Shown here: piece by piece, positions 14 through 34,601 of the stretch | How the letters are laid out: every line of letters begins with the position of its first letter | Numbering within the stretch: position 1 is the stretch's first letter | Source of the DNA: Macrostomum hystrix | Lineage: Eukaryota; Animalia; Platyhelminthes | Direction: 5' to 3' | NCBI GenBank assembly: GCA_950097015.1 | Contig: CATNEN010000007.1 | Coordinates: forward strand, 2,790,001-2,854,000 | DNA: 64,000 nucleotides | The notes under the pieces: generated by a model | Database searches by the model: none | What the model saw: only the letters and a program-made list of their open reading frames with translations | Told to the model about the DNA's origin: nothing | Program-made: the position numbers and the translations under genes

Positions 14-612
<599 letters not shown>

Positions 613-715
613 TTTACAGGTTTCTTTTCTGTGTTTGATTTGCCATTTTGACTACTTGGCAAATTCAGAAGTGACTACTTTCATTACTGTTTATTCTATT
701 TCCTAGTTTATATTC

Positions 716-6780: not shown

Positions 6781-9700
6781 ATGAACTTCTCCGAGCTTAT
6801 ACCCTACTCGGGCGGCAGTCGGCTGGCCAGTTTCTCGCCGAGCGGTTTCTACCTGGCCGAGGCCGCCCAATTCCGCGCCAACGTGCGCGACAGCAAATCG
6901 CTGGAGCTGTTGCAGTCGTTCGCCTGCGCCGATCAGATCACGGACCTGGCCTGGTCCCCTGACAGCCTGTTCCTCATGTGCGTCATGAGGAAGCGCGCAC
7001 TTGTACAGGTAAGTTGGTTAGTTCTCAGTTGGTTAGGGAAATTCTCATTAACAGTAGAAAAAGCACAGTGGTATTTCAAATACCCACTGCCTACGTCACG
7101 ACAGCTCCCAAACTGAATGACCGATTTTCGTAAAAGTCCACAAAATTTTCGGCCCTTTACAATGCAATAGCTTTCAAAGCTTCAAATATTTCAAAGAAAT
7201 ATATGGGTATTTCAAATCCCCGTGGTCTTTGTACTGTTAGCAAAAGTCCATCTCGACGCCAGGGAAATTCCATGCAAAAGTACTTTTTTTGTGTTAGGGA
7301 AAACCAATTACACAAAAGTACATATTTAACTTACGGCGTCGGTGAAATTTTTTTGCGGGAATATTTACATCTAGAAATTCGTAAAGAAAAATACATAAAT
7401 TTGATGAATACGAAATTTCAAAATGATTTCAACTGTTCAGAGCTTGATTTTGCCCACCTCATTACCTCGTAATCCCATTGGGTGCCCAGGTGTGGTCTCT
7501 GGAGCATCCCGACTGGGCCTGCAAAATTGACGAGGGCGTGGCCGGCCTCGTGGCCGCCTGCTGGTCACCGGACAGTCGGCGCGTGCTGACCACGGCTGAC
7601 TTTCACCTGCGCATCACAGTCTGGTCTTTGTCCGACAAGACCGTGGCCTATCTCAAGCACCCGAAGGCTTGTGCCAGGAACATCGCTTTCAGGTCTGGCG
7701 TTACACAGATCCATCATAACACATGTTACACAGATCCATCATAACACATGTTACACAGATCCATCATAACACATGTTACACAGATCCATCATAACACATG
7801 TTACACAGATCCATCATAACACATGTTACACAGATCCATCATAACACATGTTACACAGATCCATCATAACACATGTTACACAGATCAATCATAACACATG
7901 TTACACAGATCCATCATAACACATGTTACACAGATCCATCATAACACATGTTACACAGATCCATCATAACACATGTTACACAGATCCATCATAACACATG
8001 TTACACAGATCCATCATAACACATGTTACACAGATCAATCATAACACATGTTACACAGATCAATCATAACACATGTTACACAGATCCATCATAACACATG
8101 TTACACAGATCCATCATAACACATGTTACACAGATCCATCATAGCACATGTTACACAGATCCATCATAACACATGTTACACAGATCAATCATAACACATG
8201 TTACACAGATCCATCATAACACATGTTACACAGATCAATCATAACACATGTTACACAGATCCATCATAACACATGTTACACAGATCCATCATAACACATG
8301 TTACACAGATCCATCATAACACATGTTACACAGATCCATCATAACACATGTTACAGTTATTTCGCGATTCGCATTTCCAGCTCCGATGGCTGTCTCATGG
8401 CTTTGGCTGAGCGTCGCGGCCTCAAAGACTGCGTATCCGTGTTTGACTGCGGCGGCAGCAGCGGCGACTCCGGCTGGCAGCTGATAGCTCATTTTGACGC
8501 CGGCACAGAAGATCTGGACGGCCTGGCCTGGTCGCCGGATGCCACAGCGCTGGCCTGCTGGGACGGCTGTCTGCGGAGTCGAGTTACCATCTTCTCGCCT
8601 ACAGGTTATTAGATTACCGATGCTTATTCACTGGATTGTGACTTCAGGAGGTTGGGAGTTAGAATCTCAGCCTGTGTTAGCGTGTGCCTGCGTACAGTAT
8701 ATGTGTGCTCAGGAATCAGCGAAATGGGCAGAACTGCCTCCTCGCTTGTTGCTGGTCTACGAAACCGAAATGCCACCAAAATGGCGGTCCGAAGACGCAG
8801 CGAGGAGGCGGAAGTCGCTCATCGCTAAAGACCCACTAAGGCTAAGGCGCGGAGCCCGCGTCACTGTCCTGAAAATTACTCGTTTTGTTAAGCTCATTTG
8901 AAGGTCACTTGCAATTCTTCTTCTTCTTCTTCTTCGGGCGTGCGCGGGCCAGGGCCCATGGCACCGGGAATCAGATGATGCCCGCCTTCCCAAGCAGGGC
9001 CAGCACGGAAGCACAGCATTCAAAGACCGCAGCGGGCTCCGGGCAGGGGCCCCAGAGGCGGCAGCGGTGGGCGGTCAGGGCGGGGCAGGCGAGGAGCACG
9101 TGGGCCGCCGTCTCGTCGCCCTCGCCACAGAGTCGACAGGTGGGGGCCACCGGGGCGCCAATCGTGGCCTGGAAGCCCCGGAGGGCATGGCAGCGGTCGG
9201 CGCGCAGCTGGCAGATCAGCCGCTCGTGCCGCCGCGAGAGGTCAGTCGGCGGAGGAGGCGGCAGGTGGCCCGAGGTGCAGGCGGCGTGCCAGGGCAGCGA
9301 GCTCGTGCCCGCAGCGTCGGCGGCCGCCGCGCGGTACAGCTGGTGCCAGCGGGCAAGGCAGTGGCGGCGAATGGCGGCCTGGGCCGCAGCCAGCGGGATG
9401 TGGGCCTCAGCCTGCGGCAGCGCGGAGCCGCGCTTGGCAATGGCATCGACCGCCTCGTTGCCAGGGATGCCCGCGTGGCCCGGGACCCACTGCAGGTGGA
9501 CAGCGACGCCTCCGGCTGCGAGGTGGGAGAGGCTGGCCCAGATGGCATCGGCAGTGGTGACGCCCGTCGAGCCGGGGCCGGACTCGAGCGCAGCCAGCGC
9601 ACTCAGGGAGTCCGAGCACACGTGGACCGGCGACAGCTCGGCCGGGTCCGGTGCCGCCAACACCCACTGGAGGGCCTCGGCGATGGCCACCAGCTCAGCG

Positions 9701-12700
9701 TGGAAGCTGGACGTCACGTGACCGGCTGGGACGCACAGTGCCGTGTCGGGCTCGACCAGGGCGCCGCTGCCGCCGGCCGAGACGCCATCCTTTGCCGCTC
9801 CGTCGGTCCAGATGGCCGTGCGGGCGGGCGGCAGGCCTGCCAGCGTTAGCTCAGCCGCCGCTCTCCGTGCCTCAGGCGGGTCGCACCGGGAGGAGGGGGC
9901 GGACAGCTGCAGACCAAAGGTGACGGTGTCCAGGTTGGCCCAGGGAGGCGTCGCGGGGACAGCGCAAACGGGCTCGCGCGGGTAGCCGCTCAGGCCCGCG
10001 TCGGTGCTGACTCTGGTCGCCGTTTCCCGCCAGCCTCGGGCGCTCTGGAGGCGGCGGCGTGGGCCCTCGGCGGCCGCGCAGGCGAGCAGCGGGTTGTCGG
10101 GCGGGAGCCTGAGGGCGCGCTCGAGGAGAAGGCCGGCGTGCATCTCGGCGCGGACCGCCATCGGGGGCAGGCCGGCCTCTCGTTCTAGCACCTCCGACCT
10201 GGTGTTCCGAGGGCACCCGGTGATGACGCGCGCGCACAGGCGCTGGGCTCGGTCCAGCTGCTCAATGGCCGTCTTGCAGGCCGACGGCATCCAGGCGCCG
10301 GCCGCGTACTCCAGCACCGGCCGCACGTAGGCAGTGTAGAGCCGGCGCACGTCGGTCTGCTTGGCGCCCCAGCTGCTACCGGAGAGCGCGGCCAGGACGC
10401 CGCACCGGGCGCGGGCGCGGCCTGCGACGTTGGCGGCGTGCGCGGTGAAGCTCAGCAGGCGGTCCAGGATGACGCCGAGAAACCGGGGCTGGCGGTCCGT
10501 CGCGAGGGGGGCGTCGTTCAGCTGCAGCCGCAGCTCCCGGCTGGCCTCACCTGCGGTGGTGGAAAACAGGGATGCGGCGCACTTCTCCGGCGCCAGCTGC
10601 AGCCGCCACTTGTTTGCCCACTCGGCCGTCGCATCGATGGCCCGCTGCGCTTTCGCCTCGGCCTCCTCCACAGTCAGGCCTTGCACTGCAATGGCCAGGT
10701 CGTCCGCGTAGAGGAGCGGCGTGCAGTCGGGCGGCAGCTGGTCCGGCAGGTCGTTAATGAAAAGCGCGAAGAGCAGCGGGGCAAGAACGCTCCCCTGTGG
10801 TAAGCCCTCGCGGAAGAGCCGCCAGCTGCTCGTCGCGCCGTCGACCCTGACGGCGGCCCTTCGGTCGGCCAGGAAGCTGCTGAGCCAGCGGACCCCGGCA
10901 GCCGGGATGCCCGCGGCGTGGAGCTTGTGCAGCAGGCCCTGCTTCCAGACGGTGTCGTACGCCCTGCGGAAGTCGAACAGAACGACGACAGTCCGCCGGG
11001 CAGGGCTGGCCTGGTGACCATCACTGATGAGCTGGGTGAGCCTGGCGATCTGGTCCTCGGTGCAGCGCCGCTTGCGGAAGCCGGCCTGAGCCGGGTGCAG
11101 CAGCTGCCGGGACTCGGCCCACCAGTAGAGCCGCGCTTGGACCAGGCGCTCGGCCAGCTTGGCCATGGCGGAGGTCAGGGCGATCGGCCGGTAGGAGCCA
11201 ATCACGTCGGCCGGCTTGCCCTTCTTCAGGATCGGCACGACGTGGGCGCGTCGCCACGCAGACGGGACCTCCCCCTTTGCCCAGGACTGGTTGATCACGT
11301 GCAGAGCCGCCCGGCGACCGGCGGGGCCGAGGTGCTGCAGGTGCTCGGCACAGATGCCGTCTGGTCCTGGGGCTTTCCTGGCCGGGAGGGAGCGAAGGAC
11401 TCTGTCCAGCTCGCGAGATGAGAATTGCTTGCTAAAGTCTCCTGCCTCCGGGCTGTCAGCTTGTGCGGCGGCGCGGCTGCGGTGGTTCTCGCGGCAGAGG
11501 ATGCGCGTCCTGCGGTCTTGCGGAAGGCGGCTCACGGCGGCGTACTCCTTGGCGTAAGCCTCGGCGATGTCCTTTGGTCGGACGTATAGCTTCTGGCCCA
11601 CACGGAGCGCTGCATCCCGCTGCAGGTTGTTGCTTCTGCCGTCAAGGGAGCGAACGACTCTCCAGATCTTGGAGTGGTCTGTGTCCGCTGCCACCTCGCC
11701 GGCGAAGGCCCTCCAGCTGTCGCGCTTGGCGTCGGCGATGATCTTCTTGGCGTCTGCGCTGGCCTTGTTCCAGGCCGGCCGCTCGTTCGGATCGGCAGCG
11801 GCGGCGGCCCGCGCGGCCCGACGGCTCTTCACGGCGTCCTCGACCTCCGGGGTCCACCAGGCCTTCGGGGACGGCCGGGCCCCTCGCGGGATGAACGCCT
11901 TGTCGGCCGTCATGATGGCCTCGGTCAGCAGCCGGTTGGCTTCGGTGGCCGTCGCGGGCGGCAGGGCGTCCCAGCCAGCCAGGGCCTCCTCGGTCTGCGC
12001 GCGGAAGCCGGCCCAGTCCGCTTTGGCCCAGGCCCGCCGGGCGGCGCCCGCTCTCTTGGCTGCGCCTCGGCTGCCATGAATGATGACGCTGATCGGCAGG
12101 TGGTCCGATCCGACGTCCCTCCGCACCTGCCACTCAGCCCGGCTGGCGAGCGACTTGTGGCACAGGCTGACGTCGGGCGCCGTCTGCCGAGCATCGGCGC
12201 GTCGCGGCATGTGGGTGTGGCTGCCGTCATTCAGGATGCGCATGCCGGAAATAACGGACCATTCAAAGGCGGCCGTGCCCAGGTCCGTCTCTTCCGATTC
12301 GGGGTCCCAGGCCGGGTGGTGCGCGTTGAGGTCCCCCAGGATCACCGTGCTGGCACCTGACGGGAGCCACTGGGGGTTGAAACGCTGCACGCGGTCGTCG
12401 CCTTCGGCGTTTCTGATGGGCGGCACGTACAGGCAGTGAATGTCCAGGCTCTCGACCGTCTTCTCAGATGGGAAAACCCGGATGCCGGCCCACTCGGTGG
12501 AGACGTCCTCGGGGGCGCAGGGCCGCTCATGCAGCACCTCGTAGCGCAGCCCCTCGCGGATAAGGATCGCGACCCCTCCGCCGCGGGTGGGGCCACCTGA
12601 GCGCCGGCCGCTCTGTCTGTGGCGCCAGACTGCATTGAAGCCCGGCAGACGTGGTTCCCTTCCTTCGGCGGTGTGGGTCTCTTGAAGACAGGCCACGTCA

Positions 12701-13803
12701 ACGCGCAGGTCCAGGAGCAGCTTGCACAGTTCGGGCGTCTTGGCAACGACGCCCTCTGCGTTGAGTTGCAGGAGGTGCAGGCTGCTGGGGGCCTGAGCGC
12801 GCGCGGACCGACAGTCGGGCTGGCGCTTCGCGCCGCCGGGGGCCCGCCGTTGAGGCTCGGCAGGCTGCGTCGGCAGTTGGTCAGTCATTTAGGACCGGTT
12901 CGGACCGCCAGATGCTTGTTGGGCGGTGAGAAAGGGCTGTGCTGTGCTGTGCTTTGCTGGGCTTTGGGAGGGCCCGTTTGATGGCCTGCATTTCGTAGGA
13001 CTTGCGTCCTCCGGGGGGCACCTCGTGGAGGCGCAGGCCATTGCCCCCCACTTGCAATTCTCGCAGGCTCGCAGCTGCACTCCTACTCTGCCTACCCTCT
13101 GGAACGCGGCCTCGGCACCAAATGCGTGGAGTGGGCGCCCTCCTCGCAGTTCCTCGCCGTCGGCTGCTACGACGGCTCGCTGCGCCTATTGAACAACATC
13201 ACCTGGGAGCCTCTGGCCGAGATGCGCTCGCTCACCTGCGTTGATCCGTCCTCCGCAAACTCGTCGTCTGGCATCACCGCTTATCGCGAAATCGAAGCTC
13301 CGTCCGGCCTGCCCCGGTACGAGGCCTCCTCGCCTGGCGATCCGCCAATCCCAGTGCCGGTGGTTAAGCCGGACCCCAGCAAGCCCAATCCGAGAGTTGG
13401 CATCGGCGCCGCGCAATTCTCGCCCTGCTCCCGCTACGTGGCATTTCGCGAGGACAGCCAACCCGGCGCCCTGTGGCTCTGGGAGCTCAGCCGGCTGAAG
13501 CCATGCGCCCTGCTGCTGCACAGGAACCCTGTCCGGTCATTCGCCTGGGATCCGGCTGCCTACAGTCCGCCTAGGCTCGCCATTGTCACTGGCACCCCGT
13601 GTGTGTACATGTGGTCAGCCACTGGCTGCCTGGCTGCCCAGGTGCCTCTGTTGGACCGCTGCGGCGCGTTTGTTGTTACCAGCGTTGCCTGGCACCCGTC
13701 CGGCGACGCCCTTTTGCTCACCTCGGACGCCGACGCCTGCGTTTGCTTCCTGGAGCCGGCCGAAATAGGCGGAGATGCCGGCACCGTCATTAGTAACGAT
13801 TAA
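6781..13803 (+). CDS. WRAP73: WD repeat protein WRAP73/WDR8; exons 6781-7008, 7490-7692, 8381-8604, 13067-13803 (463 aa)
   Basis: MNFSE..., [52 protein letters not shown] and NPRVGIG..FSP match human WRAP73 along its length. GT-AG introns have consistent phases (0, 2, 1). Intron 3 holds the retrotransposon. Confidence 0.93.
7052..7236. mobile_element. MITE family D (about 38-bp imperfect TIRs starting CAGTA, flanks TTAA/TTAG)
   Basis: Left end CAGTAGAAAAAGCACAGTGGTATTTCAAATACCCA; reverse complement of right end CAGTACAAAGACCACGGGGATTTGAAATACCCA. An internal part recurs at about 26590-26665 (-). Confidence 0.65.
7699..8356. repeat. 25-bp minisatellite filling WRAP73 intron 2
   Basis: GTTACACAGATCCATCATAACACAT, about 26 copies. 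Confidence 0.97.
8666..8762 (+). mobile_element. SINE family A, 5'-truncated fragment
   Basis: GTGTGCTCAGGAATCAGCGAAATGGGCAGAACTGCCTCCTCGCT is shared with the other family A copies. Confidence 0.7.
8919..13048 (-). mobile_element. Full-length non-LTR retrotransposon, Ingi-like (I group), single ORF
   Basis: 13-bp TSD CACTTGCAATTCT at 8906-8918 and 13049-13061. 3' tail is (GAA)7, seen as (TTC)n at 8915-8935. About 160-nt 5'UTR, intact ORF, and much higher GC than flanking intron DNA. Confidence 0.93.
8971..12888 (-). CDS. Retrotransposon polyprotein: APE endonuclease + reverse transcriptase + RNase H + C-terminal Cys/His finger (1305 aa)
   Basis: APE motifs [24 protein letters not shown] motifs [27 protein letters not shown]. 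RNase H motifs TDG..AEL..SDS..WVPGH..GNEAVD. C-terminal CRLCG...HVLLAC. ATG at 12888. Confidence 0.96.
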   Translation of the reverse strand: MTDQLPTQPAEPQRRAPGGAKRQPDCRSARAQAPSSLHLLQLNAEGVVAKTPELCKLLLDLRVDVACLQETHTAEGREPRLPGFNAVWRHRQSGRRSGGPTRGGGVAILIREGLRYEVLHERPCAPEDVSTEWAGIRVFPSEKTVESLDIHCLYVPPIRNAEGDDRVQRFNPQWLPSGASTVILGDLNAHHPAWDPESEETDLGTAAFEWSVISGMRILNDGSHTHMPRRADARQTAPDVSLCHKSLASRAEWQVRRDVGSDHLPISVIIHGSRGAAKRAGAARRAWAKADWAGFRAQTEEALAGWDALPPATATEANRLLTEAIMTADKAFIPRGARPSPKAWWTPEVEDAVKSRRAARAAAAADPNERPAWNKASADAKKIIADAKRDSWRAFAGEVAADTDHSKIWRVVRSLDGRSNNLQRDAALRVGQKLYVRPKDIAEAYAKEYAAVSRLPQDRRTRILCRENHRSRAAAQADSPEAGDFSKQFSSRELDRVLRSLPARKAPGPDGICAEHLQHLGPAGRRAALHVINQSWAKGEVPSAWRRAHVVPILKKGKPADVIGSYRPIALTSAMAKLAERLVQARLYWWAESRQLLHPAQAGFRKRRCTEDQIARLTQLISDGHQASPARRTVVVLFDFRRAYDTVWKQGLLHKLHAAGIPAAGVRWLSSFLADRRAAVRVDGATSSWRLFREGLPQGSVLAPLLFALFINDLPDQLPPDCTPLLYADDLAIAVQGLTVEEAEAKAQRAIDATAEWANKWRLQLAPEKCAASLFSTTAGEASRELRLQLNDAPLATDRQPRFLGVILDRLLSFTAHAANVAGRARARCGVLAALSGSSWGAKQTDVRRLYTAYVRPVLEYAAGAWMPSACKTAIEQLDRAQRLCARVITGCPRNTRSEVLEREAGLPPMAVRAEMHAGLLLERALRLPPDNPLLACAAAEGPRRRLQSARGWRETATRVSTDAGLSGYPREPVCAVPATPPWANLDTVTFGLQLSAPSSRCDPPEARRAAAELTLAGLPPARTAIWTDGAAKDGVSAGGSGALVEPDTALCVPAGHVTSSFHAELVAIAEALQWVLAAPDPAELSPVHVCSDSLSALAALESGPGSTGVTTADAIWASLSHLAAGGVAVHLQWVPGHAGIPGNEAVDAIAKRGSALPQAEAHIPLAAAQAAIRRHCLARWHQLYRAAAADAAGTSSLPWHAACTSGHLPPPPPTDLSRRHERLICQLRADRCHALRGFQATIGAPVAPTCRLCGEGDETAAHVLLACPALTAHRCRLWGPCPEPAAVFECCASVLALLGKAGII
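12982..13049 (-). ncRNA. HDV-like self-cleaving ribozyme at the retrotransposon 5' end
   Basis: GGGGGGC(P1) AA UGGCCUGC(P2) GCC(P3) UCCACGA(L3) GGU(P3') GCCCCCC(P1') GG(P1.1) AGGAC-GCAA-GUCCU(P4) ACGAAAU(J4/2) GCAGGCCA(P2'). Every helix of the nested double pseudoknot pairs. Confidence 0.85.
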
Positions 13804-32822: not shown

Positions 32823-34601
32823 ATGGAAGCAATAGGTAAATATGAAAGACTGCAAATAGAACAGCTTTGAATTATTTTTTAAATAATTTTCACCTAGTTT
32901 TGACCAGCGGTTGTAGCCTAGTGGTTAGGGCGTCGGACTGATGACTTGAAGGTCGGGGGTTCGATTCCTGACTCCACAGGAACATTTTGTGTCCTTTAGC
33001 AAGTTGACTCTGAACTGCTTCAGTTCACCAAGCTGTTAGATGGGTACCAGCATTAGCTGGGGTAATTGAGGGTGGGTGTGGCGTCTACCCCAGTCCATGG
33101 ACTGAACAGACGTACGCAGCCTTCAGATGCGCCGCGCAATGATTACAGCTCAATTCAATTATATGCAGATCAATGTCTACAATTCTTTTGACAAAAATTT
33201 CCGACACAGACGCGTTCTCAAAGCCGCGAGCGAGCAGCGGCAGTTACAACCTGAAGCCGAGGCAGCAGGGTGGAATCGAGGGACAGCGCTTCGGCTCCGC
33301 GTCGCCAGAGCCGCAGCTCTCCTCAGCCAGTTGCGCCGTTCAGCTCGATCAGAGCGCCGCAGCTCGTCAGCTGATAGCCTCCCTGAGCGGCACCGTCGAG
33401 GCAGGTTGCACCGTCCTGGAAGAGGTTCGACGACGCCTACGGCCAGTAGCTGTTCGGCCAGCCACTGCCACAGCAGCTGCAGCCTCTGTTGGCGACTTTC
33501 GCGGCTGCCTCCGGCATCGAGATTGGGACAAAGGAGAGACCACGTCCTCTTCGTCAACCGATGGCGGCCAGGCGGACAACTTCGAGAGCGTGATTCGGCT
33601 GACAAGGCAGCGGCTGCGGCCCGCGGCCGAGAGTCGACAGCCGCCAAAGGCTGAAGCTGCCGCCGCGGCTGCTACTGCGGCCGCCGCAGCCGCCGATCCC
33701 GAAGACGAAGCGGCGCTCTGGGGCTCGCCGGACTTTGCTGAACTGCTGCGTCGCCGGCTGCGCAGCCTCCGACCGGCGCAGGAGGCTCCGCCATGGATGT
33801 CTCAGCTGGCTGCAGCCGCCGGGCGTCGGATGCTGACGCCAACAGCTGTAGAGAGCCAGTTGCCGCCGCCTCTGAAACCCGGCGACACCGACACCGACTC
33901 CCAGGCCGGCTCGGAAATTGTTAGTTTCGGTCGTACTCCGTCCACAACCACTGGCGATCTTCCACAGCACGACGAGGAGGCCTTCGATGACGACAAAGGC
34001 GTTGATCTCCAACATTGCGATCGTGCCGATGGGGTCGATGTCAGTGCAAACATCGGTGCGAACTTTGGTTCCACTGAGAATCATTCAGAACATTGTAGCG
34101 AATTTGCCCCGAGGACTGGAGCTGCAGCAGTGCCCGAGATGGCTACATCGCCATCGCCGGTACGTCGGGAGCTCACGGGGCCGCCGGAGGCCAAGGATAG
34201 CGCTGAGCACAGGTGAGGCTTTAAGTTTTATCAAATAAAACTATAGAGTGCCGCAGTGAGACTGGCCGCACCTGTTTCTTCCTCACAGACCAGTCAGCGT
34301 CCAGTCGGAACACGAGACCTCAAGGGACTCGGGGCCTCAGCCGTCTTTGACGTCCCTGCCGCAGTTTGAAGTACCTCCGGCTTCGCAAAATACCGCGTCC
34401 AAGTACCTCGCAACCGTCGCGGCGGCACACTTTGAGCGCCTCGGTCTGGCCTCGGAGCGGCAGCAACAGCGGCGGCGGCTGCGGCTCCTGCAGCGACTGG
34501 GGCCTCAAAGCAAGTTGGGCCTCGTTGAAGCTGGGGGATCCGCGGCCGAGAGGCTGAGCGGCAGCTCCTCTCAGGATGATGAGGTGCCGCAGCTGAGTTG
34601 A
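32823..34601 (+). CDS. Unknown low-complexity protein with WH2-like and DFRxxL-like motifs; exons 32823-32835 (tentative start), 33210-34212, 34289-34601
   Basis: GC-rich ORF with good acceptors (33209, 34288) and donors (32836, 34213) in consistent phases. The start is uncertain and upstream exons may exist. No family recognised. Confidence 0.6.
32903..33150 (+). mobile_element. SINE family C, full-length copy (tRNA head + CORE-like domain)
   Basis: A box TAGCCTAGTGG at 32914, B box GGTTCGATTCC at 32958. TGTGTCCTTTAGCAAGTT..TTCAGTTCACCAAGCTGTTAGATGGG resembles the MIR CORE sequence TGTGACCTTGGGCAAGTT..CTCAGTTTCCTCATCTGTAAAATGGG. Confidence 0.78.

Follow-up and report, generated by a model that had tools for sequence, protein, structure and literature searches.

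At which base does the RNA of a retrotransposon begin, and what sets that end? The question is raised by a 64,000-nucleotide (nt) stretch of the Macrostomum hystrix genome (assembly GCA_950097015.1, contig CATNEN010000007.1, positions 2,790,001 to 2,854,000), which is referred to here as the window. On its minus strand, the window carries a retrotransposon that lacks long terminal repeats (non-LTR) and is of the long interspersed nuclear element (LINE) type, ~4.13 kb in length, with G13049 (window coordinates) as its base 1. A first-pass annotation had proposed that this base is also the first base of a complete hepatitis delta virus (HDV)-like ribozyme. Judging from the sequence of the window copy and its relatives, we estimate a probability of about 0.85 that the first 68-69 nt of the element RNA fold into an HDV-like double pseudoknot which cleaves 5' of G1.

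Fold at the 5' end of the element

Read from 13049 to 12982, the minus strand matched the HDV-like nested double pseudoknot in all its helices and core nucleotides, and the earlier assignments of the helices, L3, P1.1, P4 and J4/2 were all correct as statements about the sequence. The canonical order was kept, with the P1 3' strand directly after the P3 3' strand and the P2 5' strand directly before the P3 5' strand. An optional ninth P2 pair, A9-U69, moves the end of the ribozyme from 12982 to 12981. The parts are as follows, with nt numbers counted from element base 1.

12981..13049, minus strand: HDV-like ribozyme, element nt 1-69 (sequence, descriptor score, Rfam register and covariation)
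13043..13049, minus strand: P1 5' strand, nt 1-7, GGGGGGC, with 7 Watson-Crick pairs to nt 31-37
nt 8-9: J1/2, AA
13033..13040, minus strand: P2 5' strand, nt 10-17, UGGCCUGC, with 8 pairs to nt 61-68
13020..13032, minus strand: P3 (nt 18-20, GCC; nt 28-30, GGU) together with L3
nt 21-27, minus strand: L3, UCCACGA, enclosed by P3
13013..13019, minus strand: P1 3' strand, nt 31-37, GCCCCCC
13011-13012, minus strand: the GG of P1.1 (nt 38-39), C22 and C23 pairing with G39 and G38
12997..13010, minus strand: P4 hairpin, nt 40-53, AGGAC / GCAA / GUCCU, with a GNRA-type GCAA cap
12990..12996, minus strand: J4/2, nt 54-60, ACGAAAU; the putative catalytic base is C55 (G at 12995 on the plus strand)
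12982..12989, minus strand: P2 3' strand, nt 61-68, GCAGGCCA

The +1 nucleotide is a G, whose partner is C37 in the window's family and U37 in subfamilies B and D. Cleavage is predicted at the bond 5' of G13049.

Shared start of independent copies

A DNA search of the first 150 nt against the same assembly gave 19 matches, most of them at 97-100% identity. About 12 of these copies have unrelated upstream flanks, and all of them begin at the identical G, the flank ending exactly before GGGGGGC. Two copies lacked the first 5-6 nt, and a few were fragments or tandem duplicates. In the window copy, a target-site duplication is present at both junctions, and element base 1 is therefore 13049.

13050..13060, minus strand: 5' copy of the target-site duplication, GAATTGCAAGT, of which the TTGCAAGT part is certain
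8907..8917, minus strand: 3' copy of the target-site duplication, GAATTGCAAGT
8915..8935, minus strand: (GAA)7 3' tail, a tail type also found in the metagenome relative L074
13060..13063, minus strand: CGAG target motif, just upstream of the 5' duplication copy

The junctions read GCGAG-AATTGCAAGT at the 5' flank and (GAA)7-TTGCAAGT at the 3' end, and the duplication measures 8-11 base pairs (bp), the GAA portion of GAATTGCAAGT being ambiguous with the (GAA)7 tail. The proposal that the ribozyme marks the exact 5' end of the element was thus upheld by ~12 independent insertions starting at the same base, with which the duplication agrees. Moreover, the point differences found among full-length copies of the window's family (family A) were all pair preserving: C33U gives a G-U pair, C13U a U-G pair, and G18A turns a G-U pair into A-U. 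At least three copies contain the same intact open reading frame (ORF) of 1305 amino acids (aa) at 99-100% identity, and the family is therefore young; as judged from its sequence, the element is intact and recently active.

Four copies of a 129-nt 5' fragment that includes the ribozyme (L012-L015, C1:17.53-17.55 Mb) share an identical flank. They form two pairs ~20 kb apart, with spacings of ~1.35 kb and ~2.45 kb within the pair, and represent a local, repeated duplication of a truncated copy.

Compensatory changes across subfamilies

To collect relatives, the N-terminal 400 residues were searched against the assembly at the protein level, and many related families were returned. From these, nine ribozyme variants of 65-71 nt, all from one genome and several from decayed copies, were aligned under the full pseudoknot structure. 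The subfamilies other than that of the window were:

Subfamily B1 (L050): ~65% protein identity; P1 GGAGAGC/GCUCUCU; L3 UUCACGA; P1.1 UC/GA; P3 GCC/GGC; a different P4
Subfamily B2 (L052): the G-G mismatch of the B1 P4 restored to C-G
Subfamilies B3 and B4 (L056 and L058): decayed copies
Subfamily C (L070): 5' truncated; P4 AGGAUC/GAUCCU
Subfamily D (L019): P1 GGGAAGC/GCUUCAU

Across the nine variants, 89.6% of the cells in paired columns were paired, compared to 33-47% if the partners were slid by 1-3 columns. Six pairs had changed on both sides, and none of 500 shuffles reached the observed number of doubly changed cells. Three of the six belong to P1 and were changed in subfamilies B and D. 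The outer P1.1 pair was C-G in four variants and U-A in five, and broken in none, while the outer P3 pair appeared as G-U, A-U or G-C. In P4, subfamily B has AGGGCC/GGCCCU, which differs in sequence from family A with the pairing kept, and the same holds for C as well as for the more distant families E and F. P2 was paired in 94% of its cells; its pair-keeping changes were one sided only (of the G-C to G-U type), and three of its pairs had a few unpaired cells. The J4/2 sequence CGAAAU with the catalytic C was invariant in 9/9 variants, as were the L3 positions U21, C23, C25 and G26. These alignments indicate that the fold is kept in diverged subfamilies by compensatory changes in P1, P1.1, P3 and P4, and the check on other genomic copies that had been suggested at the outset returned conserved helices together with the six doubly changed pairs.

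Seven of these sequences were combined into a covariance model, and its genome-wide search gave 29 matches at E < 1e-5, of which all placed ones were 5' ends of copies of this lineage. Further listed matches outside the placed set were C39:659047, C5:3876850 and C7:3744098. Four more outside this set had an equal score of 22.7 bits: C1:18845368, C1:23285285 and C14:764391 lie ~0.8 kb upstream of matches to the APE domain (~28% identity), and C39:195238 lies ~3 kb downstream of a match at 30% identity.

In one decayed subfamily B copy (L058/L051/L073, C7:13316216-13316321), the first half of the ribozyme, from the P1 5' strand through the P1 3' strand, was found as a 35-nt tandem duplication.

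Expected frequency of the fold

To judge how often such a fold arises by chance, we used a structural descriptor of our own, which required the RNA to start with G and to have a P1 of 6-7 bp, a P1.1 of two pairs, P3 with P2 directly next to it, P4, and a C starting J4/2. The ribozyme scored 21 and was the sole strong match on both strands of the window; the runner-up scored 15, and the maximum in 25 dinucleotide shuffles of the window was 18. In shuffles at the G+C-rich composition of the element, 6 of 300 contained a score of 21 somewhere in 8.4 kb (~2e-6 per position), and the fold alone would therefore recur by chance in a genome of 220 Mb. Any descriptor match occurred about once per 19 kb in the G+C-rich shuffles, and a score of at least 21 about once per 420 kb. 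The significant feature is that the fold begins exactly at element base 1, which is far beyond chance.

A looser descriptor, which allowed G-U pairs everywhere and matched low-complexity repeats, was superseded. Its false matches included a tandem repeat of a 25-nt unit (~7640-7925; region 7580-7925, minus strand) and a (CTGG/CTGT)n low-complexity tract (450-620, plus strand).

Distant relatives with an apparently interrupted P1

The same core, consisting of P2, P3, P1.1, P4 and a J4/2 that starts with C, recurs 40-100 nt inside the elements of families E, F and G of this genome (35-41% protein identity) and of two metagenome contigs. Their L3 reads UUCACGN, UUCUCGN or UCCUCGCU(G), where UCCUCGCU is our own reading and a scan gives a 9-nt L3. 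In these relatives, the P1 5' strand appears to consist of the first 2-4 nt of the element, followed by an insert of 32-77 nt made up of two hairpins and then by 2-5 nt before J1/2, and the outer and inner pieces jointly complement a continuous P1 3' strand.

Family E (L034-L036; L035:1237-1341, plus strand): 5' pieces GG(U) / (U)CCC; P1 3' strand GGGACC
Family F (L039-L041 and L047; L040 on the minus strand): 5' pieces GGUC / CC; P1 3' strand GGGACC
Family G (L044 and L046; L046 on the minus strand): 5' pieces GC / UGGUC; P1 3' strand GACCGGC
Metagenome contig L074, 127-275: 5' pieces GGG / GGGC; P1 3' strand GCCCCCC
Metagenome contig L079, 97-207: 5' pieces GGG / GGGC; P1 3' strand GCCCCUC

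The 5' ends of families E, F and G were fixed by 2-4 copies with unrelated flanks, and those of L074 and L079 were placed only by the shift from an A+T-rich flank to a G+C-rich element. For a ribozyme to persist in progeny copies, its cut has to fall at base 1 or upstream of it, and this agrees with the split P1. L074 and family A have the identical P1 3' strand GCCCCCC, which is paired to GGG-insert-GGGC in the former and to GGGGGGC in the latter. Five further metagenome contigs (L075-L078 and L081) had no convincing ribozyme core, and two (L080 and L082) showed partial, uncertain cores by eye, with undefined 5' ends.

The relatives also differ from the window's family in their leader. In L035, L040 and L046 (families E, F and G) and in L074 and L079, the first ~300 nt hold an uninterrupted frame that crosses the ribozyme, continues into the polyprotein and encodes a 2A peptide (D[VI]ExNPGP) 60-95 codons in. 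The ribozyme of family F contains an AUG in J1/2-P2; in family E, the stretch ahead of the 2A peptide holds no in-frame AUG. The window's family is without the insert and without the 2A peptide.

From these sequences, the chances appear about even that the 68-nt ribozyme of the window is a compact, insert-free derivative of a clade-wide HDV-like ribozyme with a discontinuous P1 5' strand. If the split-P1 forms cleave at base 1, they would constitute a new topological variant of the HDV fold, and the compact forms of A and B would then be natural deletion controls. Known peripheral domains of HDV-like ribozymes sit in J1/2, after a complete P1 (PMC4908430), and our literature search found no paper describing such an interruption of P1.

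Coding capacity and target sites of the element

The reading frames of the element are as follows.

8971..12888, minus strand: main ORF, intact, 1305 aa, encoding APE endonuclease, reverse transcriptase and RNase H domains; zf-RVT matched weakly
12889..13041, minus strand: upstream ORF of 50 codons, with its AUG at nt 9-11 within the ribozyme (J1/2-P2), read in the phase of the main ORF

The main ORF begins 161 nt into the element. One TAA, immediately ahead of the ATG at 12888, ends the upstream ORF, which appears to be what is left of the longer leader frame present in the relatives. Among protein relatives, the best is from Macrostomum lignano, at 79% identity. Automatic homolog names ("jockey" and "BS") were unreliable as clade labels. 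An "Ingi-like" assignment (Ingi/L1Tc/Vingi clade) is plausible, the hints being the single APE-RT-RNase H ORF (RT, reverse transcriptase), the 2A peptides of the relatives, and the 10-12 bp duplication with an upstream motif. For comparison, the duplication of ingi/L1Tc elements measures 11-12 nt, and a conserved motif lies upstream of their insertions (PMC3383444).

Almost every independent copy in families A and B (flanks L002-L012, L018, L050, L052 and L056) had CGAG 8-12 nt upstream of the 5' junction. CGAG together with a duplication of ~10-12 bp constitutes a strong target-site preference. Members of different subfamilies (L002 of family A and L053/L055/L056 of B3) were located at the identical position of one repeated target, GCCTCGCCGCGGAAnCGAGCTCAGGGACnT, which may itself be a repeat.

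Host gene context

The whole element lies in antisense within an intron of a plus-strand gene.

8605..13066, plus strand: host intron (GT..AG) containing the whole element in antisense, supported by spliced contigs

The sequencing runs available were of unrecorded kind, with two guessed to be RNA but none recorded as such, and consist of assembled contigs without read starts, strand or 5' ends. Contigs of three runs join 8601 to 13064, and shifting the cut by +3 gives the GT..AG intron 8605-13066. The same runs hold low-depth contigs over the element. Element base 1 lies 16 nt before the host acceptor AG (13065-13066), and the acceptor is therefore separated from its original upstream intron sequence. 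It may be that the spliced contigs derive from an allele lacking the insertion.

The downstream exon encodes WD40 repeats, and protein-language features group it with WRAP73 family clusters. The element had been described as antisense to WRAP73: its antisense position in an intron of a plus-strand WD40 gene was borne out, and the WRAP73 identity, which comes from protein features, is best taken as a lead for a WRAP73-like gene. Since the element is antisense in the intron, what the host pre-mRNA contains is the ribozyme's complement only, and, as the first-pass annotation had argued, it would be spared.

Elsewhere in the window, a tRNA-like sequence at 32907-32976 (plus strand) scored 29.6 bits against the Rfam tRNA cut-off of 29 and has a defective T arm.

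Proposed mechanism and alternative explanations

If the fold is catalytic, a transcript entering the element from upstream would be cut cotranscriptionally, leaving a unit-length element RNA that starts at base 1 with a 5'-OH end. This RNA would serve as both mRNA and template: it would be translated (nt 9-11, within the fold, form an AUG, and the main ORF follows from 161 nt onwards), and it would be copied by target-primed reverse transcription into new sites with CGAG ~10 nt upstream. Read-through transcription as the RNA source and any role of the fold in translation are parts of this scheme that we infer.

Several observations weigh against it. In the window copy, P1 is closed by G1-C37 in place of the G1-U wobble that is usual in HDV-like ribozymes, including HDV and CPEB3; subfamily B does have G1-U37. 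In a nested fold, the GCCUGC present in the host flank of the window copy can base-pair to the 3' strand of P2, and this pairing might compete with P2 and slow folding. The covariation comes from only nine sequences of one genome, several of them decayed. A scan of the window with Rfam gave no ribozyme match at gathering thresholds. In local scans, RF00094 (HDV) aligned P1, P3 and L3 in the correct register and with the identical start, at 26 bits (E 0.047), and RF01787 reached 11.9 bits against a cut-off of 37; RF00622 (CPEB3) had no listed match at E up to 10. In the Rfam comparison that the first-pass annotation had proposed, the RF00094 alignment was in register, and its score fell short of the gathering cut-off of 50. 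Rfam models of HDV-like ribozymes are narrow, and the known members have mostly been found by structural descriptors. Among the contigs of the sequencing runs, no end at 13049 was listed; these assembled contigs carry neither strand nor RNA ends, and the missing end therefore cannot count against cleavage. Finally, cleavage is argued from the fold, its position and its covariation, from which we infer catalysis.

One alternative would be a chance resemblance in G+C-rich sequence, in line with the descriptor matches in G+C-rich shuffles and with an ordinary nested folding energy (z = -0.8), although that value is uninformative because the pseudoknot lies outside such a model and cannot be represented in it. 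Chance would not account for a fold that starts exactly at element base 1, for compensatory changes in four helices across subfamilies, or for the same core in families of only 35-41% protein identity and in contigs of other organisms; the shared start and the subfamily covariation effectively refute it. A conserved 5' structure without catalysis, such as a protein-binding site or an internal ribosome entry site (IRES)-like fold resembling that of HDV, has a precedent in R2, whose protein binds a pseudoknot within the ribozyme region and whose fold is thought to be IRES-like (reviewed in PMC6765202), and cleavage in the present element is a prediction from sequence. We nevertheless consider a purely structural role improbable: the helices covary, yet the residues needed only for catalysis (C55, U and G in L3, and a P1.1 of two pairs) do not vary, and in all full-length copies P1 has its base at base 1, which a binding site alone would not need.

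It is less far-fetched, if still rather unlikely, that the ribozyme is real and that these first bases also house an internal promoter from which the element RNA is made, as in Pr77/L1TcRz of L1Tc, where promoter and ribozyme are combined in the first 77 nt (PMC3383444). Cleavage would then be a back-up for read-through RNA, or would contribute to 5'-end stability and cap-independent translation, and would not be the chief route by which the RNA arises. Such a promoter would suit an element found at many unrelated insertion sites, which in the window is antisense to the host gene so that read-through is not guaranteed, and the AUG inside the fold points the same way. On the other hand, nothing in the present data points to promoter activity, and the ribozyme would still fix the 5' end of read-through RNAs. 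Release of the element RNA by self-cleavage 5' of G1 is the reading we favor.

Comparison with known systems

HDV-like 5' ribozymes cleave at +1 in L1Tc (PMC3185411) and R2 (PMC3774820). The present case would add a free-living flatworm and an APE-RT-RNase H family to the elements with a 5' end defined by an HDV-like ribozyme; our literature search found no paper naming Macrostomum together with HDV-like ribozymes. Ruminski et al. reportedly described 5' HDV-like ribozymes in RTE and Baggins elements in 2011. As a minimal and very G+C-rich example, the window ribozyme is convenient for biochemistry, and in annotation it marks full-length copies of an active family and their exact first base. 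Its main value is comparative: with the relatives in which P1 appears interrupted, it forms a natural pair bearing on whether the HDV fold tolerates a domain in the substrate strand.

A close likeness is to L1TcRz of trypanosomatid L1Tc/ingi elements (PMC3185411, PMC3383444, PMC4035085), which likewise occupies the first bases (77 nt) of a single-ORF APE-RT-RNase H element and cuts at +1, as predicted here. The two also share a duplication (11-12 nt in L1Tc) and a conserved motif upstream of the insertion site. L1Tc has an N-terminal 2A peptide, which is also found in relatives E, F, G and L074, whereas the window's family lacks it. L1TcRz differs in having C1 and a single-pair P1.1, compared to G1, a two-pair P1.1, a GNRA-capped P4 and a CPEB3/HDV-like L3 in the window ribozyme, and its hosts are trypanosomatids rather than an animal.

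With the CPEB3 and HDV genomic ribozymes, the window ribozyme shares the same nested double pseudoknot, a similar size (67-68 nt in CPEB3) and a J4/2 in which the C is followed by GAA. The L3 of CPEB3, as quoted in the first-pass annotation, is UUCACGU; L3 is UCCACGA in the window's family, UUCACGA in subfamily B and UUCACGU in family E. CPEB3 and HDV differ in context, being located in a mammalian intron and a viral genome, respectively, whereas the window ribozyme is located at the 5' end of a retrotransposon. Among flatworms, non-LTR elements of Schistosoma mansoni also have a small self-cleaving ribozyme at the 5' end (PMC8501958), but these are twister variants and not HDV-like, and they belong to another flatworm lineage.

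In R2 of insects and other animals (PMC3774820, PMC6765202), a 5' HDV-like fold releases the element RNA from a cotranscript, as we propose here, and may aid translation of the uncapped RNA. R2 is specific for 28S ribosomal DNA, uses a restriction-like endonuclease and is cotranscribed by RNA polymerase I, whereas the window element is of the APE type and dispersed in the genome; the R2 ribozyme is ~184 nt long with a large J1/2, compared to the minimal 68 nt found here. The first-pass annotation had placed the window ribozyme among the kind established in R2, RTE and L1Tc, and our comparison leads to the same view: a well-known mechanism is very probably at work here in one more family.

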